A program made the position numbers and the translations under genes. Positions 23,002 to 63,351 of a DNA stretch of 64,000 nt are shown here, in pieces. The stretch lies in NCBI GenBank assembly GCA_964270895.1, contig OZ185445.1, one strand, 5' to 3'. The notes under the pieces are model-generated. The model saw only the letters and a program-made list of their open reading frames with translations, searched no databases and was not told the DNA's origin. The stretch comes from Podarcis filfolensis. Lineage: Eukaryota. Within the stretch, counting starts at the first letter, position 1. Every line of letters begins with the position of its first letter.

Positions 23002-23730
23002 GGCAGCGAGGATTGTGCACGGGTGCCCTCGGCAGCATATATAGGGGCTCTGCCTGTCACCTGTCACTCACCGTGGGTGGGCGCACCAGGCTGCAGCCAT
23101 CGCGCCTGTGTGCTCTGCCCACTCCTCAGCCCATCTCGCCCTCCCCTCCAATTCAGCGGTTGCAGTCGTCTTGAGCGGAGTCAGGGTCTCTTCATTGTCA
23201 CATTTTCCACAGACGCCTCCCGAAAGCACACGCCTTTCGCAGCTAAATACCGGCGATCAATTCTCACTAAACGAAAAAGATCGGTTCCCGGCTCCCCTCT
23301 GTAGAAGGCAGCATCAATTCACTGTTGTTTTCCCAAAGGGGTTCATATCTAGCTTGAATGTGCTAGAAAACCTGTTGCAAGGAAAGCACAAACAAATCCT
23401 GCAGTATTAGAAAAGCCCAGGAGTCTTGCCACTGACGCCACCAAGAACAGACTGCATATTCTTCATAACCTTATCAAAGCTAGAATCGTCTTGTGCCCCC
23501 TGCAGTAGTTTGATGTACAGAAATTGTTAAGCTTTTCACAGCATCAACACTTATCAGCTGATGTCTGCACATCAAGCTGCTGTTATAGGCATAGCTATAG
23601 TGGGCAGGTAAATAGCTGACAACTGTGAAACTCACAGATGCAGATTAAACAGCCAGAAACTATTGCTCCTGATTTCCATACTTCCTACAGTGCTTCTGTG
23701 GTATTTTCACAGCTTTTGCCCCAACTTGGT

Positions 23731-24884
23731 TTGTTGTTTAGTGACCCCATGGACCAGAGCATGCCAGGAACTCCTGTCTTCCACTGCCTCCCGCAGTTTG
23801 GTCAAATTCATGTTCGCAGCTTTGAGAATACTATCCAACCATCTCATCCTCTGTTGTCCCCTTCTCCTTGTGCTCTCAATCTTTCCCAACATCAGGGTCT
23901 TTTCCAGGGAGTCTTCTCTTCCCATGAGGTGGCCAAAGTATTGGAAACTCAGCTTCACGATCTGTCCTTCCAGTGAGCACTCAGGGCGGATTTCCTTAAG
24001 AATGGATACGTTTGATCTTCTTGCAGTCCATGGGACTCTCAAGAGTCTCCTCCAGCACCATAATACAAAAGCATCAATTCTTCGGCGATCAGCCTTCTTT
24101 ATGGTCCAGCTCTCACTTCCATACATCACTACTGGGAAAACCATAGCTTTAACTATACGGACCTTTGTTGGCAAGGTGATGTCTCTGCTTTTTAAGATGC
24201 TGTCTAGGTTTGTCATTGCTTTTCTCCCAAGAAGCAGGCGTCTTTTAATTTCGTGGCTGCTGTCACCATCTGCAGTGATCAGGAAGCCCAAGAAAGTAAA
24301 ATCTCTCACTGCCTCCATTTCTTCCCCTTCTATTTGCCAGGAGATGATGGGACCAGTGGCCATGATCTTCGTTTTTTTGATGTTGAGCTTCAAACCATAT
24401 TTTGCGCTCTCCTCTTTCACCCTCATTAAAAGGTTCTTTAATTCCTCCTCACTTTCTGCCATCAAGGTTGTGTCATCTGCATATCTGAGGTTGTTGATAT
24501 TTCTTCCAGCAATCTTAATTCTGGCTAGGGATTCATGGAGCCCAGCCTTTCGCATGATGAATTTTGCATATAAGTTAAATTAAACAGGGAGACAATTTAC
24601 AGCCTTGTCGTACTCCTTTCCCAGTTTTGACCCAATCAGTTGTTCCATATCCAGTTCTAACTGTAGCTTCTTGTCCCACATAGAGATTTCTCAGGAGACA
24701 GATGAGGTGATCAGGCACTCCCATTTCTTTAAGAACTTGCCATAGTTTGCTGTGGTCAACACAGTCAAAGGCTTTTGCATAGTCACGACCTGGCCATCTT
24801 GGGTGCCCTGCACAGCATAGTTCATAGCTTCTCTGAGTTATTCAAGCCCCTTCGCCACGGCAAGGCAGTGATCCATGAAGGGGG
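23731..24884 (-). mobile_element. BovB (RTE clade) LINE, internally deleted, 10-bp TSD CCAACTTGGT
   Basis: ORF 23707-24555 gives IKIAGRNINNLRYADDTTLMAESEEELK, typical BovB RT. (CAA)-type tail. TSD at 23721-23730 and 24885-24894. A +1 frameshift lies near 24580. Confidence 0.92.
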
Positions 24885-28310: not shown

Positions 28311-29632
28311 CAGCAGCTTTCGACATGGTCGATCACGAACTTCTGGACCACCGCCTTGCCGACGTGGGGATCCAGGGCACAGTCCTTCAATGGCTGCGCT
28401 CGTTTCTCTCTGGTCGGGGACAGAGGGTGGCGCTTGGGGGGGAATTGTCATCGCGCCACTCCTTGGTGTGTGGAGTACCTCAGGGTGCGATACTCTCCCC
28501 GATGCTTTTCAACATCTTTATGCGCCCCCTCGCCCAGCTTGTCCGGAGTTTTGGGCTGGGTTGCCATCAGTATGCCGATGACACCCAACTCTATCTGTTG
28601 ATGGATGGCCATCCTGACTCGGCCCCAGACACACTGACCAGATGTCTGGAAGCTGTGCCTGGATGGTTACGTGGGAGCCGGTTGAAGTTAAATCCTTCGA
28701 AGACAGAGGTCCTCTGGCTGGGACGGGACGATATGGGATTGAGGGGGCAACTCCCATCTTTTGCGGGGGCGCAATTAGTGCCAGCACCGTCCGTTAAGAG
28801 TTTGGTTGTAATCTTCGACACCTCCCTTTCCATGGAGGTGCAGATTGCAGCTATAACAAAGGCGGCATTTTTCCATCTCCGCCAAGTTAAGCAGTTGGCT
28901 CCTTACCTCTCTCGCCCTGACCTAGCCACTGTGATCCACGCGACGGTCACCTCCAGACTGGATTATTGTAACTCGCTCTACGTGGGGCTGCCCTTGAGAC
29001 TGACCCAGAAACTCCAGCGTGTGCAGAATGCTGCAGCGAGACTCCTTACGGGGTCTTCGCTGCGAGATCACATTCACCCGGTGCTATACCAGCTGCACTG
29101 GCTCCCGGTGGAGTACAGGATCAGGTTTAAGGTGCTGGTTTTAACCTTTAAAGCCCTATACGGCCTAGGACCCTCGTACCTACGGGACCGCCTCTCCTGG
29201 TATGCCCCACAGAGAAACTTACGGTCTTCAAATAAAAACATCTTGAAGGTCCCAGGCCACAGAAAAGTTAGGCTGGCCTCAACTAGAGCCAGGGCTTTTT
29301 CGGCTGTGGCTCCGACCTGGTGGAACACTCTGTCACAAGAGACTAGGGCCCTGCGGGACTTGACATCTTTCCGCAGGGCCTGCAAGACAGAGCTGTTCCG
29401 CCAGGCCTTTGGCCAGGGCACAGCCTGACTCCCTCCCTCGGCAATCTTCGCGGAGCTCTGGCACAATGGTGGCCAGTGGCTTGAATTTAATTAATTTTAT
29501 AATGAATGATTTTAGAGTGTTGTTTGTGTTGTACTTTTGTACTGTTTTATTGTTGTTAGCTGCCCTGAGCCCGGCTTTGGCTGGGGAGGGCGGGATATAA
29601 ATAAAATTTATTATTATTATATTATTATAATA
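28311..29632 (+). mobile_element. 5'-truncated L2/CR1-group LINE with open 367-codon RT C-terminal ORF
   Basis: AAFDMVDH...GVPQGAILSPMLFNIF...YADDTQLY...LKLNPSKTE...SRLDYCNSL; frame open to its stop at 29428; (TTA)-rich tail. Confidence 0.92.
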
Positions 29633-34745: not shown

Positions 34746-34985
34746 TTATTCATTTTCTTTATCTATTGCCAAAAGTAGTGTTTGGATGCTTCCTCTGCTT
34801 GGTGATTCCTTAATAGTCAACTCTGAAGATACTTGGTGTGTGGAGGAAGTTGCAGAGTCGTTTGCCATTTCCTTGACTCTGGGAAATCCATCTGCGTCAA
34901 GACCATCACTGCTGCTTTCCCTGGAGCTCTTTTTTGTTTCAGTTATACTTTTAATTCTTCCCAGTGCTTTATTAATGGAGACTGC
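34746..34985 (-). CDS. SPATA9: SPATA9 copy 1, last coding exon
   Basis: tacag|GCA GTC TCC ATT AAT AAA...TAA; AVSINKALGRIKSI resembles human AVCVNAVLKKVKNI; remainder divergent and Ser/Glu-rich. Confidence 0.82.
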   Translation of the reverse strand, partial: AVSINKALGRIKSITETKKSSRESSSDGLDADGFPRVKEMANDSATSSTHQVSSELTIKESPSRGSIQTLLLAIDKENE

Positions 34986-35123
34986 CTGTATACACATAAG
35001 AGGTACATTTTTTAGCATAAGGAAATGGAAAGGTTTGGAATCCTCTGCATTTCTGCCTAACTTTAAGAGATACAGTTTTGCAGTATAGCCGTACTTGGTT
35101 AGGATGCATTACTTGTATCAATA

Positions 35124-35364
35124 CAGTCGTACCTTGGTTTGTGAACGCCTTGCGAGTCGAATGTTTTGGCACCTGAACAACGCAAACCTGGGAGTGAGTG
35201 TTCCAGTTTGCAAACGTTCTTTAGAACCCGAACATCCGACGCGGCTTCTGATTGGCTGCAGAAGCTTCCTACAGCCAATCGGAAGCCGCACCTTGGTTTC
35301 TGAACATTTTGGAAGTCAAACGGGCTTCTGGAACGGATTCCATTTGACTTCCGAGGTACCGCTG
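35124..35364. mobile_element. Tc1/mariner-type MITE (predates the duplication; truncated counterpart at about 44103-44256)
   Basis: TA|CAGTCGTACC...GGTACCGCTG|TA. Confidence 0.8.
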
Positions 35365-35914
35365 TACATCAAATGCCTGGGGGAAAGGATAGAATCATGA
35401 TGGGGATGAGGTGAGCAGATCACACTTTGAAAATTTCCGGACTGGTTTCAGTCTAAAATGCTGTGTGTGTATATGTGTGTGTGTGTTGTCCTACCCCTTG
35501 AACCATCCCATCAAGGAATGCTGCATGTGGTCAACACTTGTTCTCATGAACACTTTTAATAAATGCTGGCATATTGACAGTTGGATGATTATCCTCTTGA
35601 GGTTTAAGGATGAGTGACACTTGATTCTGCTTTAGTGCCAGTGGCAGTTTCTGGCCTGTCTTGAATAGCTGCCCTTTGCAGAGTGCAATAGCAACAGCCT
35701 AAATTACAGGTTACCCGTGTATATGCTACTGTAGGTAGGCAATGTTGGTCGAGGAAAGGTCACAGCTAGCATGCCAGCTACAGCTGTGCATTGGTAATGT
35801 GCACTAAAAGGGTGCACAGTAATGGAAGAATAATGCATGGCTTCAATTCTTTGCTGAAGGGAAGGGGAAGCACGAAACAAGAAGGATCAGAAAGAACAGT
35901 ATTTACGAACCTAC

Positions 35915-36010
35915 CAGATAAATTAGTGCTGCATAAGAAATGCACATTATACCAGTGAGGGCGGTCTTCGTTGGATAGGAAAGGACATCATAAAGGAACA
36001 TGGATTTTTC
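35915..36010 (-). CDS. SPATA9: SPATA9 copy 1, coding exon 4 (hydrophobic, predicted transmembrane segment)
   Basis: ctacag|GAA AAA...TAT CTG|gtagg = [32 protein letters not shown] (human ...[21 protein letters not shown]). Confidence 0.93.
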
Positions 36011-36016
36011 CTGTAG

Positions 36017-36258
36017 AGAAGAAGAAGATGAGTTTGGACTTGATATCCTGCCTTTCACTCCCCTTAAGGAGTCTCAAAGCGGCTAACAATCTCCTTCCCC
36101 TTCATCCCCCACAACAAACACTCTGTGAGGTGAGTGAGGCTGAGAGACTTCAGAGAAGTATGACTGGCCCAAGGTCACCCAGCAGCTGCATGTGGAGGAG
36201 CGGGGAAGCGAACCCAGTTCACCAGATTACGAGTCCACTGCTCTTAACCACTACACCA
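36017..36258 (-). mobile_element. tRNA-headed SINE (Squam3-like) with (TCT)n tail abutting the SPATA9 exon 4 acceptor; duplicate at 44737-44978
   Basis: Minus strand reads TGGTGTAGTGGTTAAGAGC...GGTTCGCTTCCCC (A/B boxes)...TCTTCTTCT. Confidence 0.72.
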
Positions 36259-37162
36259 AGCTGGGATTCAAAGTCAAGGGATTCATTCTTCTGCCATATT
36301 GCAGTTTGGTATACATGATCCTTTCAAAGTTTAGCACTTTTAAGTTCCTTTTTTTTGAACGGGAGAGTTAACACCTTGCTTATATCTTCCTTATTTAAAT
36401 CAATGGGACATAAAGCTCAACATGGATAACAAGCTAATATTCACATGCTAGACAGTTCCTAAATATTTCCATGCAGAGCTCCTGATGTGGTTTATTAACT
36501 CTCTGTGCGCCCACACACTATCACTGCTGCCCCAGACAAATTATTGGGGAAGATCAGGTTTACAAATTGACAGGTCATTATGTAAATCCTAAACATATTT
36601 CATGAAAATAGTTCCCATTGATTTCAATAGAACATAAGGCTACAAGCCCATGTCCCATATTGACATGGGAGTAAACTTTTGAACTCAGTGGGACTTAGTT
36701 TTTAGCAAATATGCACAAAGCACTAGTCTCTAATCCACAAGCCTGTACCACAATATATCTATTAGTCTGCCACAAGATTCCTTTTTGTTTGTTTGTGCTG
36801 TAATATGCTATCACTGGAACATTGGAAGCTGCCATACTGAATCTTATCTCATACTGAATCCTTGTCTGCACAAGGAAGATCAAAGTGTATGTGAATGTTT
36901 AAAAAAAAGGTCTTTGCACCTAACATTTTTAGAGCAAATAGCATCAGCTGATAAGGCTTATAATTATGAAAATCTCAAGATGGCATGGAGGAGGAAATTT
37001 TACCTTCTCATCCTCTGTTGTGGTGCTGAGGAAAATCCCTCACACACTCACTTAGAACTCACTTAGAAAATATGAGATGTTTATGTTGAAATTCCTAATA
37101 AAGATATTTTTTTAAAAAAAGAAAAGAAAATATGAGATGGAGCAGTCACACCCATTGCCTAC

Positions 37163-37390
37163 CTTCACTTTATAAAGAGGTTGTTTGGGAGCATTCAGTT
37201 TCTGCAAGAGACGATGTGATAGCCTATGCAGCCCTGCCAATTTTTGAATGAGGTGTGGCTGCACGAATTTTGCAATTGATTTTGAAGAGCGGGAGAGATG
37301 AGCTAGCCCATGCCTAATCATTACGGCATGAGCGGAAGAGAACACTCTCGCCACAACAGACCTAGACTCCTGCACGGTGCGATTGCTGTC
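37163..37390 (-). CDS. SPATA9: SPATA9 copy 1, coding exon 3
   Basis: ttcag|GAC AGC...GTG AAG|gtagg; GLAHLSRSSKSIAKFVQPHL...LNAPKQPLYKVK (human [20 protein letters not shown]...VNAPRQPLYNIQ). Confidence 0.92.
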
Positions 37391-38367
37391 CTGAAATATA
37401 AGTCAATACAAGGAGGGAGAGAAAAAAAATAGTCAAATTACGGTACTCTGGGGGGGGGGAGGCCTAGAACAGAGAAAGCCAGTTGATGCATCAACTAGCT
37501 TCTTGCAATGTACAAGGGAATGTGCTCTGCTACTAGCTCACTAGCATGAGTGAGGAAGGATAATATTTAATCAATATATTCTCTCCTACTATCCTCAACA
37601 TTCCCACACTGGGCCCCATTGCTGATGTAGTAATAGTTTGCCATTGGGGACAATGAATATATGATGAGATCTGCAAACATCTGACCCTGGCATTCATTCA
37701 TTTATTATATTATATTAATATCTCACTTTTAATCCAAGGAGCTGAAGATGGCATAAATGGATCTCTCCCTTCCCACAACCCTGTGGGGGAGGTTAGGCTG
37801 AGAGACAGTGACTGGGCTGTCATCCAGGGACTTCATGGCTTAGTGGGAATTTGAACCCTGGTCCCCCCTAGTCCAACATTCCAGCAAATGCACCAAGTTG
37901 ACATGTATTTTAGACAATTATTCACAGAAACACCAGTAGGGGGGAAATTAGCATTACTACCCTTGGGCTCTTTACTAAAGAACATTGTATGCCGTAGAAC
38001 TTTAGACTGCTTTAGAAACATCAGTTTAACCTTGCTTACTTGGATTAATTAGTCAAAACTCAATAGATGCACACACGGGTATGCTTATTTTGGGGATTTA
38101 GTAATAATATGGTTTTTATCATCATTGGATAAAAATGATACGTGTGTGTGTAGCAGCTTTCTGGAGGTATGCTATACCAAAACTTGTCTCCCCTGAATAT
38201 ATTAATTATTTTTCTAACTTTGTGTATAACTTTGTGTATAAGTAAAACATTAAGCTGAAACTTTGCTGAGTTTGTAGCAAATGCAGTCTTTAACAGACTA
38301 TTGTATAAATAAACTTAACTTTCAAATTAATAGTGAAAGAGTATTAGTATTAGCTAAGAAACATTAC

Positions 38368-38456
38368 CTGGTTTGAGCTTGTCAGTCTCAGTAAATTGGG
38401 GAATTCATCCCTAATCTCATCTATAATTTCCAAGAAGAGTCTCTGTATTATCTGGG
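38368..38456 (-). CDS. SPATA9: SPATA9 copy 1, coding exon 2
   Basis: ttcag|CC CAG ATA...AAC CAG|gtaat = QIIQRLFLEIIDEIRDEFPNLLRLTSSNQ (human DEFKDEFPTILRLSQSNQ). Confidence 0.9.
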
Positions 38457-38765
38457 CTGAATTGAAAAACAGTAGTCAAAAAGAATAAAGCGCCTGTCTT
38501 CAAAATTATACTTATCGTGTAAGCATTGTTCAGACATGAAATATTGTTCAGACATGAAATTCCACAGGCCAGAGAGGCATTGAGGGCCATATTTGGCCCC
38601 CAGGAATGAGGTTCCCTACCCCTGGCCTATCTGGTAGGAACAGGTTTTTTTTTTAAAAAAAAAATCAAGTACAGAGGTGTAAAGAAGGCAGTGTTCCCAG
38701 AATCCAGGATTTGAGAACTCATTTCCATTCGGGGATTCAAGACTCAGAAACAGAGTAGCTCATAC

Positions 38766-38826
38766 CTTGTCCAGCAAATTTGTTGACCAGCTGTCCACAT
38801 ATCCAGCCAATTGGCCTGAAAGACAT
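38766..38826 (-). CDS. SPATA9: SPATA9 copy 1, first coding exon
   Basis: ATG TCT TTC AGG CCA ATT GGC TGG ATA TGT GGA CAG...G|gtatg = MSFRPIGWICGQLVNKFAGQ (recalled human [20 protein letters not shown]). Five-exon join of 61+89+228+96+240 nt gives 237 aa, open frame. Confidence 0.9.
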
Positions 38827-39137
38827 CCTGCATGCCCTGGTGTCTATCTACAGCTCCTGAATTTAGCCTAATCTGGTTTTATGCCATATATGTATGACAA
38901 TACGCCATACATGTGTGTATCTCCACCTCCAAGGCAATAAACCTTTATGAGAACACAATGTGCCTCTTAAGCACAGTGCCTCCTTGACTCCTGACATCAT
39001 GTGTACACAAGAAAATAGCCCCCCCCAAATCACTGTAGTCTCAACAACCAGGACTTTCAAATATGATCATTCCAAAATAACATAATGTAAAAACCAATGG
39101 CTTTCTTTTTACATCACAGAAACCACATTAACAAGTA

Positions 39138-43766: not shown

Positions 43767-45638
43767 TTATTGTTTGTTTTCTTTATGTATTGCCAAAAGT
43801 GTTCGGATGCTTCCGCCGCTTGTGGAGGCAGTTGCAGAGTTTGCTGTTTCCTTCATTCTTCGAGATTCATCTGCATTGAGACTATCGCTGCTGCTTTCCC
43901 TGGAGCTCTTTTTTGTTTCAGTTATGCTTTTAATTCTTCCCAGTGCTTTATTAATGGAGTCTGCCTGTATACACATAAGAGGTACATTTTTTAGCATAAA
44001 GAAACGGAAAGGTTTGGAATCCTCTGCATTTCTGCCTAACTTTAAGAGATACAGTTTTGCAGTATAGCCGTACTTGGTTAGGATGCATTACTTGTATCAA
44101 TACAGTCGTACCTTGGTTCGTGAACACCTTGCGAGTCGAATGTTTTGGCACCTGAACAACGCAAACCTGGGAGTGAGTGTTCCAGTTTGCGAACGTTCTT
44201 TGGAACCCGAATGTCTGACGTGGCTTCTGATTGGCTGCAGAAGCTTCCTACAGCCACTTGTTCTCATGAACACTTTTAATAAATGCTGGCATATTGACAG
44301 TTGGATGATTATCCTCTTGAGGTTTAAGGATGAGTGACACTTGATTCTGCTTTAGTGCCAGTGGCCGTTTCTGGCCTGTCTTGAATAGCTGCCCTTTGCA
44401 GAGTGCAATAGCAACAGCCTAAATTACAGGTTACCCGTGTATATGCTACTGTAGGTAGGCAATCTTGGTCGAGGAAAGGTCACAGCTAGCATGCCAGCTA
44501 CAGCTGTGCATTGGTAATGTGCACTAAAAGGGTGCACAGTAATTGAAGAATAATGCATGGCTTCAATTCTTTGCTGAAGGGAAGGGGAAGCACGAAACAA
44601 GAAGGATCAGAAAGAACAGTATTTACTAACCTACCAGATAAATTAGTGCTGCATAAGAAATGCTCATTACACCAGTGAGGGCGGTCTTCGTTGGATAGGA
44701 AAGGACATCATAAAGGAACATGGATTTTTCCTGTAGAGAAGAAGAAGAAGAGTTTGGACTTGATATCCTGCCTTTCACTCCCCTTAAGGAGTCTCAAAGC
44801 GGCTAACAGTCTCCTTCCCCTTCATCCCCCACAACAAACACTCTGTGAGGTGAGTGAGTCTGAGAGACTTCAGAGAAGTATGACTGGCCCAAGGTCACCC
44901 AGCAGCTGCATGTGGAGGAGCGGGGAAGCGAACCCAGTTCACCAGATTACGAGTCCACCGCTCTTAACCACTACACCAAGCTGGGATTCATAGTCAAGGA
45001 ATTCATTCTTCTGCCATATTGCAGTTTGGTATACATGATCCTTTCAAAGTTTAGCACTTTTAAGTTCCTTTGGTTTGAACGGGAGAGTTAAGACCTTGCT
45101 TATATCTTCCTTATTTAAATCAATGGGACATAAAGCTCAACATGGATAACAAGCTAATATTCACATGCTAGACAGTTCCTAAATATTTCCATGCAGAGCT
45201 CCTGATGTGGTTTGCTAACTCTCTGTGCGCCCACACACTATCGCTGCTGCCCCAGACAAATTATGGGGAGGGGGAGACTTGGGGAAAATCCCTCACACAC
45301 TCACTTAGAACTCACTTAGAAAATATGAGATGGTTATGTTGAAATTCCTAATAAAATATTTTTTTAAAAAAGAAAAGAAAATATGAGATGGAGCAGTCAC
45401 ACTCATTGCCTACCTTCAATTTATAAAGAGGTTGTTTGGGAACATTCAGTTTCTGAAAGAGACCATGTGATACCCTATGCAGCTCTGCCAATTTTTGAAT
45501 AAGATGTGGCTGCACGAATTTAGCAATTGATTTTGAAGAGCGGGGGAGATGAGCTAGCCCATGCCTAATTACTGCACAAGCGGAAGAAAACACTCTCGCC
45601 ACAACAGACCTAGACTCCTGAACAGTGCAATTGCCGTC
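43767..45638 (-). pseudogene. SPATA9: SPATA9 copy 2: exons 3-5 only (45414-45638, 44635-44730, 43767-43964), frame open but start exons missing
   Basis: Near-identical to copy 1 including introns, with intact splice sites and only in-frame indels. No match to coding exons 1-2 was found upstream. Confidence 0.8.
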
Positions 45639-50004: not shown

Positions 50005-50333
50005 CTATTTAAGACTTCTTCCTTCTAAGACATCATATATATCATTCAATGTATATTCGAGGTATTTTATAAGTTCTTCTGAGTCTTTTTCTAAATAGCT
50101 AGTTATAATACTTCCTACCCAATCATCAAACATGTTATATCCAACTCCGAAACCATCTGGCACGACTGGTCCAAACCCACCATGATTAATTGCTTCACTG
50201 CCTAATGTACTAGTTGAAATTATAATATGGTTTATGTTTTTGTAGGCTGGGTCATTATAAATATCAGGCATACGTCCACCTCTGCGCTGGACGAGGTACT
50301 TCAAGGCAAATAAATGGCGATCAAATCCTTGGC
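50005..50333 (-). CDS. CPT2-like exon 5 (last)
   Basis: atccag|GC CAA GGA TTT GAT CGC CAT...; GQGFDRHLFAL, STS motif (ISTSTL), GGFGPVVPDGFGVGY, ends EGRSLK*. Full join is 1995 nt = 664 aa. AATAAA on the minus strand at 49904-49909. Confidence 0.96.
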
Positions 50334-52897
50334 CTGGATTTAAAGAAAAGGGCAAATGCATAGTGTAAGTATTAAAACAACAACAGGGCTTACAGATCCT
50401 GCCTACTAAAAGAGGCCACAAATACTTGAAACCCACACATGAATGACCAAAAGCTCAGGTGAAAAGGAAAGCTAGCTATGTTCACTGATTTCAAGCGGTC
50501 TGCCCTGATTATGACTACCCTTGGATACAACCTACTGTACAGAAAATGAGCTAGAGTATTTTGATTATATACTTAGTAAATATAATTTTCCATTCTAGTT
50601 ATATGAAATAGAAAACACTATTTACACATGATTTTGTGAAAACACCTCCATTAAGTGATAGCTTTTAAACAGCTTCAAGCGGTTTCTTCTATCATTGATG
50701 CCATTCCTGATTTTTATCATATTTTCCTGTTATCCTGGAATGACCTGCAACTTTGTCTAATGATGCCAGACAGCTAGACACCCATGAGTATCCCCAAAGA
50801 TACACTGAAATGTCTCCCCACTAAGCATAACCATACGCCATCTTACTAGGGGGTGTATGGCCACATTTGGTGTAGCATGACATGCATGTGCCTACCTTCC
50901 TCCTGATCTTCTGTGCTATATCTCTTCTCTGTTGGTTAGAGCATGGTGCTGATAAAGCCAAGGTTGCAGGTATGGTCCCCGTATGGGACAGCTGCATAGT
51001 CCTTATTACAGGGGGTTGGTCCCTTCCAACTCTACAGTTCTGTGATTCTCCCACACAACTGAGCCCAAGAATCTGAAAGCGTTTATTTTTTTCTCTTAGA
51101 TACAACTTTTCATTGTGTGGTTTAGCACTAATTGGTCTCAACAAACCAGCTTCATAATCTATGGATTCAAGTTGGTATATTTAATGGTGAACTATGGTCT
51201 GTGGTTTAGATGAAAAAAGGCAAATTTAAGCTTCTAAGCGCCTCCAGGCTACAGGAGGAAATAAGAGGGGAAAGCATGTAAACCTGGAAGGAAGGTAGGC
51301 TCATAAATGCCATCCTAAAACACTATTTAGCATGGCATCTGAATGTCTATGACTGTTAGGAAATATGCCGAATTTTAGAACATTCCTGTTTCATAGAGTA
51401 TTTATTTTATTTAAGGCTGTGTTTGATCGTCTAGCAATCTCAGGAGAGTACACTGAAACAAATAAACAGACTTCAAATTACAGGGCAGATAAAAACGAAC
51501 CACACCAAGTACAATAGTAATTAAAACAAATTCAGATAACCTACATAACTAAGAGAATTGTTTAGCAAATATCTAAGCAATACTGTTTTTAGCTGGTGAC
51601 AAAAACTCAAATGTTGGTGCTAGCCATATCCTGAAAGGGAGGGCATTCCACACCCGGGGCTCCACCACAGAGGAGGCCCTCTCTTAGGCTACCACACAGC
51701 AGATGTCATTGAAGTGTGGTAAAACGTAACTGGCATCCCTCAATGACCTTAATTTAGGGACAGGACAGTTGTGAATAGACTCTCCTAGTTTCACGAAGTT
51801 CCAAAGGACCTAAGTAAGCTGCTATCAAGTGAGGTGCTATTACTGTTATGTCAGTTAGTGTTTTAAATGTTGAAATGTTTTTGTTTTTGTTGTTCTTGTT
51901 TTTAAGATGTTTTCAGCTTGTATTTTTGTTGTGAACTGCCCTGAGAACTACGGATGAAGGGCGGTATACAAATTTAATAAATAAATAAATAAAATAAATG
52001 AATAAAGCTGGCTTTTGAATGATTCAGAATTTTTTATCAGACCAAAAGAAAGAAAAGCCCTAATGCTGTATCACTGGGGTGATGCTACCTACCAAGTTCT
52101 GCTAGAATAACAAAAGATACAAGATTTTAGAATGCAGACGCTGTAAAGAATAGATGTTGCTGGTGGGTTTAATACAAATAGCTCCTCTAGGGGTACAGAA
52201 CTGGACCTATAATAACCAAAATGCAAATAGCTCTTCATAATTGCAAATCTAGCCAATTTTGAATTACAGAGAATCCTTCAAAGAAGAGACTTTTTTAAAA
52301 GTCACATATCTTCATTTCAACATGTTTTGTACTCTTCATTTAGAGAGCTTTTATTTTAAAAGGCATGTGGTGAGAGGTTAACATTATAAATATACTAGAG
52401 AAAGGGCATTTTTCTCCTCATAAGAACCAGTATGGTGTAGTGATCAGATCAGGGCTAAGGCCACTGGAGTTCAAAGCCCCATTCAGCCATAAATCTCAGG
52501 CTAGTCACAAAGGCTGCTGCAATCTTTTGCACTGTTACCTAGTAATAAGTAAGTCCCATTGAATTCAATTAACTTAATCTTGAGCAGACATGTATAGGAT
52601 TGTGCTGTCAATCTGTCAGCCTAACTTACCTCACAGGGTTGTTGTGAGGATAAAATGGGCATGGGAGAATGACGTATAATGCCTTGAGCTCCTCAGAGGA
52701 AGGGGGATATATAAATGAAATAAAGTATGAAAAATATCACTGCACTATCTATCTCTCAGCAAGGTCTTTAGTTAAATGAAGAAAAGCCAGAATGAATTAT
52801 CTCCATGTGAAAACTCCTAGGAAACATTACCCTTTCTGTAAGACAAGTCAAACAACAGAAATCCAATATGTATGAGAAAATGTTGAAAAGGCCTAAC

Positions 52898-54196
52898 CTA
52901 ATGTAGCCTCCAGCTGCAAGCGTCTATGATACTTCGAACATTCGTCAATCATGTTTCTCATATCTTCAGTGCTATGCTTCCCTCGTTGATCAATAAATGC
53001 AACTGTACATTTTTTTGTGTACACAGATGTTGGTCGAATTGTTTCAGTGCGACCATGCTTAAAAGCTGCAGTACTACATGCTTCGTAAGAAGGAAGAAGT
53101 TTTCCATACTGGTGATAGACAGCCATCTGGCATGCAAGCTGAAACACAGCATCAGGGCTCAAATTTTGATTTATTAAATATTGTTTTCCAAACTTTTTAT
53201 ACTTAAGCGTTCTAACACAGAACATTCCCCTTTTTTGATCAAATTTCTGACGTGCAGCGCTTATAGCAGATGTTATTGTGTGATCCATATTAAATTCAAG
53301 CTTGTCACATGATGTAACAAATAGAGCTGGACTGGCTTGTGGTACAAGAGCCGGGTGCTCTGTGCTGTCTCTATAGACTTCATTAATAAAACGCAGAATT
53401 GCAATTCCATCTCCCCAAGAGTGTTCAAAATTTATTCCGGCAGTACCATCACTAGTGACAATCAGACTAAAAGATTTGTCAAACCAGCGATTGAAACCAT
53501 ATCCATGAAGAAAACAATGAGTGAGTTCAAGTTCATTTTGGGGGGAAGCTCTATCTAAGCAAAGACAAAATACGGCACTGTCAATTTTCTTGAGGTTTTC
53601 TTCGTTACCTTTTTGAACAAGTTCCTGTCTTAGTGTTGCCCAGGTATTTCTGTCTTCAGTTGTCAGGTAGCAAAGTTCAAACTTAGGCAACCGATCAGCA
53701 TCGTGTATTATTTGTGTTAAATGAGCCAGGATTTCAGATGGGTGTAGAATGTTACCAAAAGCATCCAATACTTCAAAAACATAGAGATGTCCATTTCTCA
53801 TCACCAACAGATGTCTTGCAAATTCACTTGTGAACAATGCATCTTTGCTTAAATTAGGAATTCTGGTGCTGTTGAAGAGTGACTTATATTGTGACATGTC
53901 TAAAGGATATGCATTCACCAAATACGCTCCATACCAGGATATACTAGGTGGAAGAATACGGATAAAATGTTTGAATACTTTACTCTGACCCCATTTGCGA
54001 TTGACATAATATATATCTGGCCGCAAATAGTTATTCTTCAGGCTGTTAAGAAATTTTAACGATGATACAACCAGATTTGTTGCTCTCACTATTTGCCTGT
54101 TGTATTCCGGTTTTGGGTCAGGATTTAAAGTAATGAAAGGGTTGTAGTTTAAAACAATTGGATCTCTTGCAGAAAGATACATATCATACCAGGGCC
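52898..54196 (-). CDS. CPT2-like exon 4 (catalytic core)
   Basis: gtag|GG CCC TGG TAT GAT...TTA G|gttag; 1299 nt. Motifs PWYDMYL, SWYGAYLVNAYPLDMSQY, NRWFDKSF, catalytic FEHSWGDG, CSTAAFKHGRTETIRP. Confidence 0.96.
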
Positions 54197-55003
54197 CTAC
54201 AAAAAATAAAATAAAAAAATATCCAGTTAATAAAATGCACATTTGTCTCTTTGATATATCAAAGATAGTTGCACAATCAAATCCAAGAGGTCACCAGTGT
54301 GGATAACAATCACTGTCACATGTGCCATTAAAGAAAAAAGTCTACCTTAAGAAAGTTGAAGTCTTACCCAAATAAGAACAGTTTTGGTCACACACACACC
54401 CTCAAAAAAGATATTGTAGAGCTGGAAGATGTGCAGTTCACAAAACGATCAAGGGGCTGGAGCAACTTCCCTAGGATGAAGATTTTTGTTTGTTTTTTTT
54501 AGCTTAGAAAAAAAGCAGGCATAAGGGAACATGATAGACATGTACAAAAGTATGTGTGGTGTTGAAAAATTCAATACCCCAGAGTAATCAGTTGAAGCTG
54601 AATTTCAGGGAGATTCAGGACAGAGAAATAAAAATAATGTATTTCATGCAGGGTATTGGTAAACTATGGAATTTTGTTACCATGTAATGTAGTGATGGCT
54701 GACAACTTAATCAGCTCTACAGGGGGATTAGATGAATTTATGGAGGATAAACCTATCAATGATGGCTATATATTCCCTCCAATATCAGAAGTATGCCTCT
54801 AAATGCTAGTTGCTGGGAATCTTAAGTGGGAGAGTGCTATTGTGCTTATGTCCTGCTTATGGGATTCCCATAGATATTTACTTAGTCAACAGCAACAGAG
54901 TGCTCAACTATACCGGCTTTTGGTCTGATCCAATAAGCTCTTCTTATATTGGTCAATATTTATTCACCTAATACTAACAGAATATGTGTATTCATTAAGC
55001 TAA

Positions 55004-55266
55004 AGGTAAAGGGTAAAGGGACCCCTGACAATTAAGTCCAGTCATGAGCGACTCTGGGGTTGCAGCACTCATCTCGCTTTAAAGGCCGAGGGAGCCAGCG
55101 TTTGTCTGCTTCCACAGACAGTTTTTTCCAGGTCATGTGGCCAGCATGACTAAGCCATTTCTGGCGAAACCAGAGCAGTGCACAGAAAAGATGTTTACCT
55201 TCCAGCCGAAGCAGTACCTATTTATCTACTTGCACTGTGTGCTTTCAAACTGCTAGGTTGGCAGGA
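55004..55266 (-). mobile_element. Sauria-type SINE, 5'-truncated
   Basis: 14-bp TSD ATTCATTAAGCTAA at 54990-55003 and 55267-55280. Confidence 0.85.
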
Positions 55267-55876
55267 ATTCATTAAGCTAATGAATACTAAATAAGGATAT
55301 TATCTGGAGAATATGCAACACAGAGACTTGACTGTTCCAAAACTTGAAACAAAACCAGTGATTTAAGAACTTTGAAAAACACTTAAGATAACAATTAATT
55401 TTTTTTGTGGGGAGTAATAGAAGTCAAGACTATATATGCTTCTGAGGACCAAAAGATACAGGATAACGTGTAGTCTACCAGACAGAAAGTTTCAGCAGAG
55501 GTACAGAGTTCATTCAGCTGACCATTTTGAGTGCTTTGTTTTTCTGTTTGAATTGTGTTTTGTCTGCAATTTGAAAATGGAAAGTGATCATGTGACAATT
55601 CTGTTATTCACCTAGATATCATGAGTGAACTAGCCATTGTGTAATCAACTTTTTAAGTTTTGGGATAGAGCATTCAACTGCAGTCTCCACATGAAGTGGA
55701 ATTCTTACATGACTACTTTATCACAAACATATAATCTGGTGGGGGAAAACAATCCTCACATAATGAGAGAGCATGGTTGTTGAAAAACAATTCCTAAACT
55801 GTCTCTGGAATAAACATCAATAATAATAAGAAAGTTCATGGGCATTTTTTTAATTGCAAGAATCTTAAAAACCAAC

Positions 55877-55983
55877 CTGCTATATAACTTGTATGCTTAT
55901 TAAGTCTATCATGTTCCAGAAGATCACGGTGTATTAACCTCCCTTCTCCAGCTTCAAACTTTCTAGCAATTTTTTCAGTATTT
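55877..55983 (-). CDS. CPT2-like exon 3
   Basis: ttctag|A AAT ACT GAA...ATA GCA G|gttgg = NTEKIARKFEAGEGRLIHRDLLEHDRLNKHTSYIA; 107 nt, same as recalled human CPT2 exon 3. Confidence 0.92.
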
Positions 55984-57274
55984 CTAGAAATTGAAAAAGT
56001 GTTACTCATCTTAGCACTGGATTTTAATAGTATTTATTATAATAAATTATAATATTTAGTTAATATAATTCCCTTTTATGTAACACATACAGTGTATATG
56101 CAATATATAGTGCCACCCTTACACACCTGGACATTAATGTAGGTTGTGCAGGAGCAGTGTTTCAACGAATCACACATTAAATAAACATTATATGAAATTA
56201 ATGGATGAAGTAAATATGACTCTGAAAAGAGTCAAGTCAGGTGTGCTCCTTAATCAAAGTCAAGGCTAACAAATATTGTAAATAGAAATTGTTGTAATTC
56301 CAGGCTTGGAGTTTTTGAGGAAGTAAATGTTTATATGAATTCTATTTAGGAGTCCATAAAGACAGTTTGCTATGACAGGTCTTCCTGAACTTGCTGCATG
56401 AATCATTTACCTGGATTATCAACACAAATTCCAGGTCCACTATGGTGTCTACAAATTCCAGAGAACTCAGAAGAGTCTTCCACTGTGCATGTGGAAAGAA
56501 CCTGAGGTGGGACTGGTCTCTCTTATCAGGGGCCTTAGCAGCTAGGTTTTAGAGAAGCAGAAGCAGCAAAAGGACTTGGGCTGTTTCTGCCACCTCTCAG
56601 ACCCAGTATGAAGTCACACCAGAACCCCTTTCCCTGGTTCCTTCAGCAAAAGAAGGCAGAAGAAGCAGAAGTCCATCCCTAGTAGATTGTGCCGCTTCTG
56701 ATTCTCCAAAGCTGAGCAGGAAGTGAGTGGTGGAGCATACCACTCCCTTGCATAATCTGCACACAGCAAAAAATTTGGGGGAAGGGGGAGAGGAAGTGCA
56801 CTGCCAACTAAAAACAAGGGCTGGACCCCAATTATCAGGGAAACAGCACCAAAAACATACACGTCCCAAGTAAGTGTGCAAAGGATTGCATCTTAGATTG
56901 TTTTCATTCAACTAGGGATGCAAACTATGTTTTTAAGTCAAAGGTTTCACAGAAATTGTGGTTTCTGAGGAGCGGGAAGTGGCACCATACATTTTTCTGG
57001 GAAGGAGTTACCAGTAAATATAAGAAGCTATTTTACATTGAGTCAGAGAATATGTCCAGCTGGCTCAGGCTGTGTATACACAAGAGCCACTGAAGACTGT
57101 GTAGTTGTTTTTTTCTACATAGTCCACACACAATCTAGATCTTTTTTATTTTTTGGGCGCCCCCAAAAAGTGCTTCTTGAGAAATTGGTTCCATTTTCAA
57201 AAAGGAAAGCTCATTGCAGATTGATTCTGCATTACCCCACAATGTGTCCATTTGAAAAAAGGCCCTCTGCGTGG

Positions 57275-57600
57275 TTCCCTGTAATCTCACTTCTCGCAGT
57301 GTGAGGACCGCCAGAAGGGCCTTGGGCTGAACAATTGGGTGGTGACGTTCCTTCAGGTATACAGGGCTGAGGCCGTTTAGGGCTTTAAATGTCAGCACCA
57401 GCACTTTGAATTGTGCTCGGAAATGTACTGGGAGCCAATGTAGCTTTTCAGGACAGGTGTTATGTGGTTTCAGCAGCTGCTCCCAGTCACCAATCTAGCT
57501 GCCGCATTCTGGATTAACTGTAGTTCCGAGTCACCTTCAAATGTAGCCCCACGTAGAGCGCATCAAAGTAGTCCAAGTGGGAGATAACCAGCGCATCAAG
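57275..57600 (-). mobile_element. Degraded L2/CR1-group LINE fragment
   Basis: Minus-strand VLTFKALNGL and LDY motifs similar to the 28.3-kb element; frameshifted. Confidence 0.7.
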
Positions 57601-57959
57601 ACTGAAAGCAGCATGTTGAGGACAGGCATTAACAATTCTTGATCGAGAAAAGTTACATTTTTGTGCTACAAATGGGTTAGTGTGTACACAGCCTCTGTCT
57701 TATTTCTACACTAACTAATAGCATCTCTGCAGGGTTTCAGACAAGATGCTGAAGATTGAACCTGGGACAATCAGTATGCCAAGCATGTACTGTGCTACAG
57801 CTCTTCCTATTGGCAAGGAGCACCAATAGAAAACACATACAGAGCCATACAAGAGAGTAGTTGTTTAAGCAGCTGCTGGTGATAGAGCTGGAGAGCAAAT
57901 GTTAATTTTTGTGTTTACATTTGACATATTGAAATAATTGCAAGTGTCATTTCTTGTAC

Positions 57960-58040
57960 CTGTACTCTTCTTCATTCAATAGTGGCTTCTGGGCAGCTAA
58001 ATATCTATTAATAGTATCCTCCAGTTTTGGAATAGGCAAT
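57960..58040 (-). CDS. CPT2-like exon 2
   Basis: ttgtag|A TTG CCT ATT CCA AAA CTG GAG GAT...TAC AG|gtaca = [27 protein letters not shown]; 81 nt, same as recalled human CPT2 exon 2. Confidence 0.93.
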
Positions 58041-59699
58041 CTACAAATGGATATTGACAAATTATAGATCTGGCACATAAATCCTCAGAGATTACTACCT
58101 CCCCTTCAATATACCAGCCCACCTGTTCATTCATATTTAAATTAATAATTTATGGCACATAGACACATAATTTATAGATTACCTGGAATGGGGGAGAATA
58201 AATACTCTTTTAATTTGCAAAGCCTTTGTTGCCTGATCACCCAGAGGTGATTCTTACTTGCCACAAGTATTATTTTAAAAAATTAAAGACAACTTAAATA
58301 ATGAAGACACCAAAGCCTCTTATCTACAAATGTTAAAAACAGTAAGAGTGGAAAGACTACTAGTTCTATTTCCACAATGATACATTCGCACTGAATCTTT
58401 ATGCCTTCTAAGATTTAAAGGATATAATGCACAATGAAAATCAGAGGAAGCGAAATAAATCACATATCAGGGACCCCCTACAGTAGCAAACCAGCAGTGC
58501 CTCACTCATACTGATTTATATCTGCAATGTCAGCAGGTGAGGACCAGTATGAGCTATCCCCATGCTCACAGAAACATGCATGCAGATACACAACAGAATT
58601 TTGTCCTGTGAGGATCAGAAGCGCTGAAACACTTGTCTCCTACAAAAAGCATCTTATTTCAAGCAGCTTAATGCTTCCTACAATCCTGCAGTATAATCAG
58701 GATGGTTAAACAGTTATTAAATGCTGCACACTTTCCACATGTGCACTACATCCATTTATGGATTGTGAGCAGCCATTGAAAAGGGTGCAACTATTCCAGT
58801 TAAACTAGACATATTAAGGCATAATTAGTCTTAATTAATGTTTAGGTTTACCAGGAAAACTGATATGAGATTAGTTTTAATAGAACAAATGTTAGGTGGA
58901 CAGATGTGCACACAATGTCAATAAATATTATTTATAAATCAATCAATGAAGGAATCTTTCTCAGGTCCTCCTTCTGCCCAGGACATGCATGAGCTGGGCT
59001 GCAGTTTGTAAGTGTGTTGTGCAAATGCTCCCTGCAGTCCTCCAGAAGCTGGAAACAGGCTAGTTTAACCTCTGGTTTGCTAGTGAAACTGAATTACAGT
59101 GTCAAAAAATGATGCACATCTAAAAAGTGTGTCACCAACATGAAAAGCTTGGAAAGCTCTGGGCTTTGCTAACGTCCCTTATCAGTGTTGCATCTCTGCA
59201 TGGTGTATCCACAATGGATCCTAGTGCTAAGCTGGCATGCACAAAAAGAGTCTTGTGGTGCCTTGACACCTAAGAGCGCAATCCTATCTGTTTACCAGAA
59301 AATGTACTTCCACAAAGCTCAACCAACTTGCCCTAAAGTAAGTGGCCATAGGATCGCAACCCAATATACTGCACAGCCTAAGTTTCTGCAGATGGTAACT
59401 GCATTAGTATTTAAGGCGACAGCTTTTAAAAATGGTCCTGAGACGACTCACAATGCAAACGTACAACGTGGTCAAATAAATCTTACTTATATTTTGCACT
59501 TAAGTGTGGAAGGAGGAGCTCACTCAAGTAGGATCAGCCCCAAGCACTCTGCCCAACAAGCGGGCCGGCTTTCACTTGAGGTGTCTTGTTGCGTTTGCTC
59601 TTAAGTGCAAACTACTGTGCATATATAACCCCTGTGGGAACGAGTGGCTTTTTGGGAAGAGCAGGAGGAGGAAGAAGAAGGAGGCATGAGGGACCTGCT

Positions 59700-60200
59700 C
59701 GCCTTCCCGCTTCCTCCTCAGCTCCTCTTTCTTCCTCACCCCCCACCCTGCAAGTCTGGAGCAACGGCGACGCGGGGGAACCTGGGCAAGCTGGGCTGGA
59801 AGTGCATGGTAGGAATGGTGCTCCGGTGCACGAAGTGATGGTCCGTGTCCTGCTCCGACACGATGCCTTCCAGCTGCCCCACGGTCCTCCAGTAGCGGCG
59901 GCTCCTGGCCGCGCTGCTCCACAGGGCCGCGGCGCCCCACCGTGGCCTCGCTCGGTGCATGTTACGTTGAGAAGGGGTGGGGGGGGAGCAGAGCAGGCGC
60001 CAACCGATCCTCGCCGGCACGCGCTTCTTAGAATGGCGGCAAACGGCCGCGCTCGGGCGGTAACCAGGGCAACGCGAGGGAGCGCGAGAGGCCGTTGCTC
60101 TTCTGCAGAGGAGGCGCGGGCGAGCGCTGAGGCGGCCTTGTTCTTTGAGTCTCCCTCATGGCCCCCTCGTCTGGTGCTCTTTTCTTTTTGGGGTTGGGGG
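59700..60200. promoter_or_regulatory. CpG-rich promoter region of the CPT2-like gene with X-box (RFX) motif GTAACCAGGGCAAC at 60060-60073
   Basis: GC/CpG-rich stretch over exon 1. Motif fits GTNRCC(N0-3)RGYAAC. YY1-like AATGGCGGC at 60032-60040. Confidence 0.55.
59782..59960 (-). CDS. CPT2-like carnitine O-palmitoyltransferase, exon 1 (mitochondrial presequence)
   Basis: aacATG at 59960; Arg/Ala/Ser-rich N-terminus MHRARPRWGAAALWSSAARSRRYWRT with no acidic residues, then HRSTIPTMHFQPSLPR (human CPT2 QRSIVPTMHYQDSLPR); phase-2 donor AG|gt. Symbol left blank because orthology to CPT2 is unresolved. Confidence 0.8.
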
Positions 60201-60278
60201 GGTAGAGCTTCTCCCCCGCCTCATATTTTATTCCACCTCGGTCGGTGTATGTTTCTAGGTCACCCGTTTTACCTTGCA

Positions 60279-60742
60279 GTGCCGGATTTACGTATAAGCT
60301 AAACAAGCTATAGCTTTAAAAATTTAAAGAAAAAAACACAACTGGATGTAAATTTCCAAAATAGAAGATAAAAAACAAAATAAAACCTACATACAGCAAC
60401 AGTGTTTTGTGTTGAGTAGGCGCCTATGATGTAAGTAATGGGCCCTGCTAGCCTGCTCCCTAAAATACCACTGGTTTGCTCATTTCTATATATAGGGTTG
60501 TATTTCACTATTAATATACTTCTTTTTAATTGTATTTCAGTTCAATAATTACTTTGATAAAATACATATTTTGTTATGTGCAAATGGCTTTAGATACCTA
60601 TTAGGTCGATAAATTACCATATAGCATATGTTCAACACAAAAAACAGTGGCAATTTGTTGTTGACAAAGGACAGCTGGATATATAAAGGGCCCCATTACC
60701 TTCAGTAGCTTAGGGCCTCATCAAACTTAAATCTGTCCCAGA
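60279..60742. mobile_element. hAT-like MITE (termini CAGTGCCGGATTTA...TAAATCTG); related copy in opposite orientation at about 26626-26994
   Basis: Both terminal segments are shared with the 26.6-27.0 kb element; the interiors differ. Confidence 0.5.
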
Positions 60743-62909: not shown

Positions 62910-63125
62910 GTACGTGGGCTGTGTTATTTGTTCCTTTAGTGTTTCCTGTCTCTGGCAAAAACAACAACAACAAAACCCGTGTGCCTTGAGAAAATAATGA
63001 TGATTCTTGTTGTCACTTGAAAAACATCATTTGCTTTCCCCCCTCTTCTCCCCTTCCCACATTCTCTTCATTTTGTCGTAATAGATGTTTGATACCAGCA
63101 GATTAAAAACATTGTTTATTTGTAG

Positions 63126-63351
63126 GTCAGTTCACGTTGTAGCTTTTGGAAATGAAAGAGGTGGCTTTTCCGAGGATGATCAGCAGAGGAGTCTGATTTG
63201 GACCTATCTTGGGAGAAGCGCTCTGGTTTCAGAGACTGACAGCAGCTTGTTGTTAAACTCTGCCAACTATGTTAGAAATCCTGCATTCACCGAATATCAA
63301 GCCTGTGTGTTTGGAAATGTCAGATTGGTGGTACATGACTGTCCTCTCTGG
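63126..63351 (+). CDS. RHOBTB3: Rho-related BTB domain-containing protein 3, coding exon 2 (gene continues beyond window)
   Basis: tgtag|G TCA GTT CAC...CTC TGG|gtaag; SVHVVAFGNE...LIWTYLGRSALVS...SSLLLN...FTEYQACVFGNVRLVVHDCPLW matches the human N-terminus; 226 nt. Confidence 0.94.

Follow-up and report, generated by a model that had tools for sequence, protein, structure and literature searches.

A 64,000-nucleotide stretch of the Podarcis filfolensis genome (NCBI GenBank assembly GCA_964270895.1, contig OZ185445.1; the whole of this stretch is hereafter called the window) contains a five-exon gene whose product resembles carnitine palmitoyltransferase 2 (CPT2). This gene, here called CPT2-like, is not the lizard orthologue of CPT2: it belongs to a separate clade, lies on another chromosome, and a canonical copy is present elsewhere. 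Judged from sequence comparisons, CPT2-like is likely to be a functional, protein-coding CPT2 paralogue that arose by a DNA-level duplication before the gnathostomes and encodes a mitochondrial enzyme of the CPT2 type, probably a specialised isoform. The literature treats CPT2 as a ubiquitously expressed gene present in one copy, and all of the work on disease and knockouts comes from eutherians. A full-text literature search returned no paper describing a vertebrate CPT2 paralogue, and its matches to “Cpt2L” referred to liver-knockout mice. The gene itself is already in the databases under an automatic name in many genomes. What the analysis adds is the age of the gene, together with its orthology, its distribution and its status under selection; the gene contributes a hitherto undescribed protein to a familiar enzyme family, without amounting to biology of a new kind.

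Structure of the CPT2-like gene and its product

CPT2-like is encoded on the minus strand. In the splice model, exon 1 (59782..59960, 179 nt) carries the ATG, a putative Arg-rich presequence and a phase-2 donor, and is followed by exon 2 (57960..58040, 81 nt) and by exon 3 (55877..55983, 107 nt), which has the same length in all copies examined. Exon 4 (52898..54196, 1299 nt) encodes the membrane insert, His381 (rat His372) and the Tyr493/Ala495/Thr506 carnitine site, and exon 5 (50005..50333, 329 nt including the TAG stop) encodes the STS motif at residues 595–597 and Gly607 (rat Gly600). Exons 4 and 5 are the two long minus-strand open reading frames (ORFs) of the region. The joined coding sequence of 1995 nt specifies 664 amino acids (aa) with no internal stop, all four introns begin with GT and end with AG, the exon entry phases are 0/2/2/1/1, and the window sequence is free of N. 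The exon sizes, coordinates, splice borders and 664-aa frame of the original prediction were all reproduced, and the translation contains each of the motifs that it had named, FEHSWGDG, STS and the 30-residue insert starting NRKWGQ. A G+C-rich stretch (0.60–0.68) at 59700..60300 covers exon 1 and its upstream flank and, judged from composition, is a probable CpG-island promoter of CPT2-like. The suspicion that automated annotation might already label the gene CPT2-like was correct, since the best match of exon 4 was P. muralis XP_028604024.1, “carnitine O-palmitoyltransferase 2, mitochondrial-like”, which is identical to the window product at 661 of 664 residues. The window protein differs at 3 residues from each of the P. 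muralis, P. raffonei and P. lilfordi proteins. DNA identity to the P. muralis locus is 94–97%, with a synonymous divergence (dS) of 0.02–0.03, and stand-alone CPT2-like models of 660–680 aa exist in most species.

The P. muralis protein (3 aa different) matches the Carn_acyltransf domain (PF00755) at residues 61–648, covering profile positions 1–573 of 574 (E = 4.7e-177). The crystal chains of rat CPT2 (2H4T, 4EYW and 2DEB) align from end to end (residues 43–664, E ~6e-249), with about 55% identity to the solved structure, whereas chains of CrAT, CROT and ChAT match only from residue ~217 on (E = 1e-55 to 1e-73). The catalytic His381 and Ser595-Thr596-Ser597 are invariant in all of the CPT2-like (21/21), CPT2 (27/27) and outgroup (7/7) sequences. 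Also invariant in the 21 CPT2-like sequences are, in rat numbering, His372, Asp376, Gly377, Trp116, Tyr120, Tyr486, Arg498, Thr499, Arg503, Arg554, Ser588-Thr589-Ser590, Gly600, Phe602 and Tyr628. From the structures of rat CPT2 and mouse CrAT, we take His372 to be the catalytic base and STS to form the site for the oxyanion and the trimethylammonium group; Tyr486, Ser488 and Thr499 are presumably ligands of the carnitine carboxylate, and Gly600 presumably stands where CrAT has a tunnel-blocking Met564. The small tunnel residue is Gly607 in the window protein and Gly in 21/21 CPT2-like sequences. The N-terminus is Arg-rich, with 7 R/K and 1 D/E among residues 1–35, and the C-terminus has no signal resembling peroxisomal targeting signal 1. 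A block, YWRTVG...DTDHHFVHRS, precedes the mature domain and is conserved across the amniote CPT2-like copies. The 30-residue insert aligns without gaps to rat residues 179–208, a segment that confers membrane association on CPT2 (PMC8125234).

In P. muralis, a second CPT2 was found beside CZIB, one of the genes next to which the original prediction had proposed to look for it. This canonical CPT2 (666 aa) is 53.6% identical to the window protein over its full length and 55% identical over exon 4, and it lies on a different chromosome record (OZ076958.1) from CPT2-like (OZ076964.1). Its neighbours are a gene of the SDF family (SLC1A type) on one side and a CXXC_Zn-b_euk gene (CZIB) on the other, an arrangement that we take, from the gene order at human 1p32, to be the one expected around CPT2. 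The coding exons of this canonical gene measure 176/81/107/1305/332 nt with phases 0/2/2/1/1, so that the intron positions match between the paralogues. The pattern x/81/107/~1300/329 recurs in CPT2-like of Lacerta, Zootoca, Rhineura, platypus and the shark Heptranchias, and human CPT2 likewise has five exons (PMC7221885). A processed retrocopy was ruled out by the four introns at parental positions and phases. With a canonical CPT2 elsewhere and introns at matching positions and phases in the two genes, the claim of a second, intron-bearing CPT2 that is not a retrocopy was borne out.

Age, distribution and chromosomal setting

Two phylogenetic trees were built without a cyclostome sequence. 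The first (IQ-TREE, LG+C20 with posterior mean site frequencies, 55 sequences, protostome and tunicate outgroups) recovered a CPT2-like clade (support 100/99) and a canonical CPT2 clade (100/96), both broadly following the species tree. The CPT2-like clade comprised three sharks (Cetorhinus, Heptranchias and Heterodontus), the caecilian Rhinatrema, platypus, three marsupials, emu, kiwi, Crocodylus, two turtles and eight squamates; the canonical clade comprised sharks, rays, ray-finned fishes, coelacanth, lungfish, amphibians, reptiles, birds and mammals. Seven species were present in both clades, and their two paralogues were 52–58% identical. The approximately unbiased (AU) test rejected a tree with all chondrichthyan sequences together, as expected for a shark-only duplication (log-likelihood difference 66, p = 1.5e-4), and one that joined tetrapod CPT2-like to bony-vertebrate CPT2, as expected for a duplication in bony vertebrates only (difference 69, p = 5e-4). 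The second tree had amphioxus, a hemichordate, seven echinoderm sequences and a tunicate as outgroups, with gar, bowfin, reedfish and two newts added, and supported the gnathostome group and the CPT2-like clade at 100/100 each.

Since both copies occur in sharks and tetrapods while the amphioxus, tunicate and ambulacrarian sequences fall outside (100/100), the trees place the duplication before the gnathostomes, that is, after the amphioxus/tunicate split and before crown gnathostomes. The ancient duplicate postulated in the original prediction was thus supported by two clades that each hold sharks and tetrapods. The interval from the amphioxus/tunicate split to crown gnathostomes contains the 1R/2R genome duplications. 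In its timing alone, the pair CPT2/CPT2-like is consistent with the ohnologues of a whole-genome duplication that the original prediction suggested. The immediate neighbours of the two genes, an SLC1A-type gene and CZIB versus RHOBTB3, SPATA9 and RFESD, are not mutually paralogous, and a literature search on the 2R paralogon (1p32/5q) returned nothing that settles ohnologue status. A candidate cyclostome sequence, placed as sister to the gnathostomes in one tree, turned out to come from a sea star. As a separate observation, one contig of the sea star Asterias rubens encodes a pair of CPT2-like proteins that group together in the tree, which represents an independent echinoderm duplication.

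The distribution of CPT2-like was read from annotated proteomes (best 120 matches) rather than from genome searches. With lizard exon 4 as the query, all of the matches listed above the canonical band (≤582 bits) were CPT2-like, and they came from squamates, turtles, crocodilians, palaeognath birds, platypus, marsupials, Rhinatrema and sharks of three orders. At least seven marsupial species carry CPT2-like (Sarcophilus, Trichosurus, Phascolarctos, Gracilinanus, Notamacropus, Sminthopsis and Vombatus). Among the matches listed, none of the CPT2-like sequences came from frogs, salamanders, ray-finned fishes, coelacanth or lungfish, and the canonical CPT2s of groups lacking CPT2-like were abundant. 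Repeated losses are indicated, because among the matches listed CPT2-like was found only in sharks, one caecilian and amniotes and not in the other groups. The original prediction had described the gene as absent from mammals, a claim that failed in view of platypus and the at least seven marsupial species. Its scenario of retention in sauropsids and loss in mammals did not hold either, as monotremes and marsupials keep CPT2-like and no neognath bird copy was seen. Among mammals, only eutherians were without CPT2-like in the annotated proteomes searched.

The two neighbours named in the original prediction, SPATA9 and RHOBTB3, were both found around CPT2-like within the window. The first coding exon of RHOBTB3 (approximately 63085..63351, plus strand), an ORF with a predicted start Met, is divergently oriented to CPT2-like, and the two start codons are ~3.1 kb apart. 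SPATA9 lies on the minus strand at 34749..38847 (exon 1, ~38740–38847; exon 2, ~38353–38475; further exons to 34749) and matches PF15824 (E = 5e-11). In P. muralis, the order is RHOBTB3 (BTB domain, opposite strand), CPT2-like, a partial SPATA9-like gene and RFESD (Rieske domain), and the full SPATA9 of the window falls between the partial copy and RFESD. Upstream of CPT2-like, and read in the opposite direction, is a 612-aa BTB gene (RHOBTB3) in P. muralis, Lacerta, Zootoca, Rhineura and wallaby. The wallaby order is RHOBTB3, then CPT2-like and SPATA9 within a single fused model, then RFESD; all five exons of wallaby CPT2-like are intact, with 94% identity to Trichosurus in exon 5. In the shark Heptranchias, two collinear SPATA9 matches on the same strand were located 5–6 kb downstream of CPT2-like, one to exon 1 (start Met, “RPIGW.CG”, GT donor) and the other to exon 2 (“DEFPNL”). 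Thus, the cross-species synteny proposed as a check places RHOBTB3 upstream in lacertids, Rhineura and wallaby and SPATA9 downstream in shark, lizard and wallaby. Orthology is supported independently of the tree, because the pairing of CPT2-like with SPATA9 is common to shark, lizard and wallaby. The platypus flanks contained only one weak SPATA9-like match outside CPT2-like (E = 0.002), which was not counted as evidence, and no neighbouring gene was returned within 10 kb of CPT2-like in Cetorhinus.

Between CPT2-like and SPATA9, the window also contains a partial second SPATA9-like set of three exons (43773..45638, minus strand; PF15824, E = 3e-8). The two better-conserved exons of this set show 89–91% protein identity to the SPATA9-like part of a P. 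lilfordi model, and the set is annotated in P. muralis as a 124-aa SPATA9 gene. It looks like a local tandem duplication in Podarcis.

Selective maintenance, expression and possible function

The ratio of nonsynonymous to synonymous differences per site (pN/pS) in CPT2-like was 0.16 for Podarcis–Lacerta (Fisher p = 2e-8), 0.35 for Podarcis–Zootoca (p = 3.5e-4) and 0.48 for Lacerta–Zootoca (p = 0.016), and the corresponding substitution ratio (dN/dS) against Rhineura was 0.18–0.27. In the P. muralis–Lacerta pair, dN/dS was 0.22–0.27 for CPT2-like and 0.09–0.15 for canonical CPT2. Given pN/pS below 1 in the lacertids and the latter two ranges, CPT2-like is maintained by purifying selection that is about twofold less tight than that on CPT2. 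Lizard–shark identity is 55.5% for CPT2-like and 71.9% for CPT2, and the excess change in CPT2-like is concentrated at rat residues 101–200 and 601–650. Between P. muralis and Lacerta agilis, dS was 0.09–0.13 for canonical CPT2 and 0.045–0.053 for CPT2-like, and this roughly twofold gap suggests regional mutation-rate differences between the two chromosomes.

Seven changes are fixed in amniote CPT2-like (R161K, E174D, F176Y, H177Y, T185S, S488A and M548L); the positions concerned do not vary in CPT2 and scarcely vary in the invertebrate outgroups, and sharks mostly keep the ancestral residue. Some of these changes fall in residues 174–185, which lead into the membrane insert. The faster evolution of CPT2-like, together with the changes that tetrapod copies have fixed at the carnitine serine and near the membrane insert, makes it probable that the gene provides a specialised second isoform, either limited to certain tissues or altered in its kinetics, and not a redundant copy.

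The history and mode of action that we propose for CPT2-like are as follows. A DNA-level duplication in which the introns were kept would have occurred after the amphioxus/tunicate split and before sharks and bony vertebrates diverged, and CPT2-like would have remained beside SPATA9 ever since, and beside RHOBTB3 in the amniotes examined. The protein would be imported into mitochondria by means of its Arg-rich presequence and would use its 30-residue helical insert of the CPT2 type to dock on the inner membrane from the matrix side. With His381 as the base, STS as the oxyanion site and an acyl tunnel left open by Gly607, it would transfer acyl groups of medium and long chain length between carnitine and CoA, so that the predicted net conversion, as for CPT2, is that of medium- and long-chain acylcarnitines and CoA to acyl-CoA. 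The second inner-membrane arm of the carnitine shuttle put forward in the original prediction is likewise an inference drawn from conserved residues. We advance only tentatively the more far-reaching view that CPT2-like could be a specialised second inner-membrane acyltransferase of jawed vertebrates, tissue-restricted (possibly to the germline, in view of the suggested read-through into SPATA9), with an altered carnitine site (Ser to Ala) and an altered surface for docking to the membrane or the translocase, that non-eutherian vertebrates would thereby have a matrix arm of two enzymes, and that eutherians and neognath birds may have independently collapsed it to one.

Several observations weigh against a functional, ancient paralogue with CPT2-type activity. 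With the closer outgroups of the second tree, monophyly of canonical CPT2 received support of only 77/86; the dating is unaffected, because both groups hold sharks and tetrapods, so that all resolutions need a duplication before the gnathostomes. No CPT2-like sequence from eutherians or neognath birds was present among the annotated-proteome matches listed, the genomes themselves not having been searched. Constraint on CPT2-like is weaker, with 231 invariant columns in six matched species compared with 328 for CPT2. No full-length spliced CPT2-like contig was found among the Logan assemblies, where canonical CPT2 had dozens, and the evidence for expression of CPT2-like consists of NCBI isoform models. 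Finally, rat Ser488 is replaced by Ala in 17 of the 21 CPT2-like sequences, including the window copy, with Tyr486 and Thr499 retained and with Ser still present in three sharks and Gracilinanus. The replacement takes away one presumed hydrogen bond to carnitine. Because a residue that we take to be a carboxylate ligand is lost in most copies, the carnitine affinity or even the substrate of CPT2-like may differ.

A rival reading is that CPT2-like has been neofunctionalised, keeping the fold and chemistry and performing another job: a different acyl range, much weaker binding of carnitine or another betaine as acceptor, a preference for the reverse, acylcarnitine-forming direction, or a germline or testis isoform co-transcribed with SPATA9. 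The seven fixed derived changes, the faster evolution and the loss of constraint centred on 101–200 and 601–650 are in its favour, but no other residue of catalysis or binding has changed, nor has the Gly of the open tunnel, and Ser488 is kept in sharks and one marsupial. Gene models in which CPT2-like is joined to SPATA9, a gene named for spermatogenesis, point in the same direction. In the NCBI models of wallaby and Alligator sinensis, the acyltransferase runs to the end of exon 4 and continues with SPATA9 from its exon 2, so that the Carn_acyltransf match stops at profile position 485–499 of 574 and SPATA9 starts from position 20–24; the P. lilfordi model joins nearly the whole acyltransferase to a SPATA9-like segment, and pure CPT2-like proteins of Hemicordylus are filed as “SPATA9 isoforms”. 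The fused models suggest read-through transcription of two same-strand genes, although they could be an annotation artefact, and they hint at a shared expression of CPT2-like and SPATA9, possibly in testis. On balance, we regard a change of job as doubtful.

The same models raise the possibility that the real product is a CPT2-like::SPATA9 chimera, a conjoined gene without exon 5 and hence without STS, as the splice from exon 4 to SPATA9 exon 2 in wallaby and Alligator sinensis would imply. This is very unlikely, because wallaby and all the other species have an intact exon 5 whose sequence is highly conserved, STS is invariant, and most species have stand-alone models. The conservation of exon 5 and STS everywhere indicates that the stand-alone enzyme is the selected product. 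Separately, the Alligator mississippiensis protein KYO19374.1, named “spermatogenesis-associated protein 9”, was considered as a CPT2-like sequence and dropped: the tree placed it in the canonical clade and its cluster is that of canonical crocodilian CPT2, so that the name is a database mislabel.

The patchy distribution with its many independent losses, the dN/dS about twice that of canonical CPT2 and the lack of assembled full-length transcripts among the Logan assemblies could also be read as signs of a decaying, non-functional relic that is drifting towards loss, as in eutherians and neognath birds. We consider this highly improbable in the face of intact five-exon ORFs from shark to lizard and wallaby, pN/pS significantly below 1 in every lacertid pair and catalytic residues invariant in 21/21 sequences. 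A translocated canonical orthologue, or a recent duplication confined to lizards or sauropsids, has nothing in its favour beyond general similarity to CPT2 and can be dismissed in view of a canonical CPT2 at its own conserved locus in P. muralis and Lacerta, the trees, the AU tests and the synteny in shark and wallaby, with the paralogues only 52–58% identical in each of the seven species that have both.

If CPT2-like is indeed a selectively maintained paralogue about 450 million years old (our own estimate) that sharks, reptiles, ratites, monotremes and marsupials possess, the matrix arm of the carnitine shuttle would have been ancestrally a two-gene system. Studies of fatty-acid oxidation and quantitative PCR or RNA-seq measurements of “CPT2” in lizards, turtles, crocodilians and opossum may then conflate the two isoforms or miss one. 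The repeated loss of the gene, the fixed active-site change from Ser to Ala and the changes beside the membrane insert would constitute a natural experiment.

Other features of the window and comparison with known acyltransferases

Further from CPT2-like, a single-exon ORF for a rhodopsin-family G protein-coupled receptor (21661–23067, minus strand; 469 aa, G+C 0.61) lies where GPR150 is expected. As commonly happens where DNA is GC-rich, long ORFs on the antisense strand overlap this one. Two reverse-transcriptase ORFs (PF00078), at 23710–24555 on the minus strand and at 28325–29425 on the plus strand, are fragments of retroelements of the long interspersed nuclear element type; the latter also has matches within CPT2-like introns of platypus and shark.

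Among known systems, the closest to CPT2-like is canonical CPT2, as represented by rat 2H4T, 2DEB and 4EYW. The two share the same five exons and phases, a putative presequence in the case of CPT2-like, the insert and the lack of transmembrane segments, together with the catalytic His, Asp376, STS, Tyr486/Thr499/Arg498/Arg554 and the tunnel Gly. They differ in that CPT2-like, at 52–58% identity within a species, has RHOBTB3 and SPATA9 instead of an SLC1A-type gene and CZIB as neighbours, forms a separate gnathostome-wide clade, evolves about twice as fast, carries S488A and six other fixed changes in tetrapods, and has a conserved extra N-terminal block (YWRTVG...DTDHH). CrAT and CROT (1NDB and 1XL7) belong to the same Pfam family and share the catalytic mechanism, but they match CPT2-like only from residue ~217 (E = 1e-64 to 1e-73) and lack the CPT2 insert, and CrAT presumably has Met at the position of Gly607. 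CPT1A, CPT1B and CPT1C form the outer-membrane arm of the shuttle and are reported to have diversified by vertebrate genome duplications, with lineage-specific losses (PMC4589379). Unlike CPT2-like, the CPT1 paralogues have been described and are kept in eutherians, and CPT1 has transmembrane helices and is regulated by malonyl-CoA.

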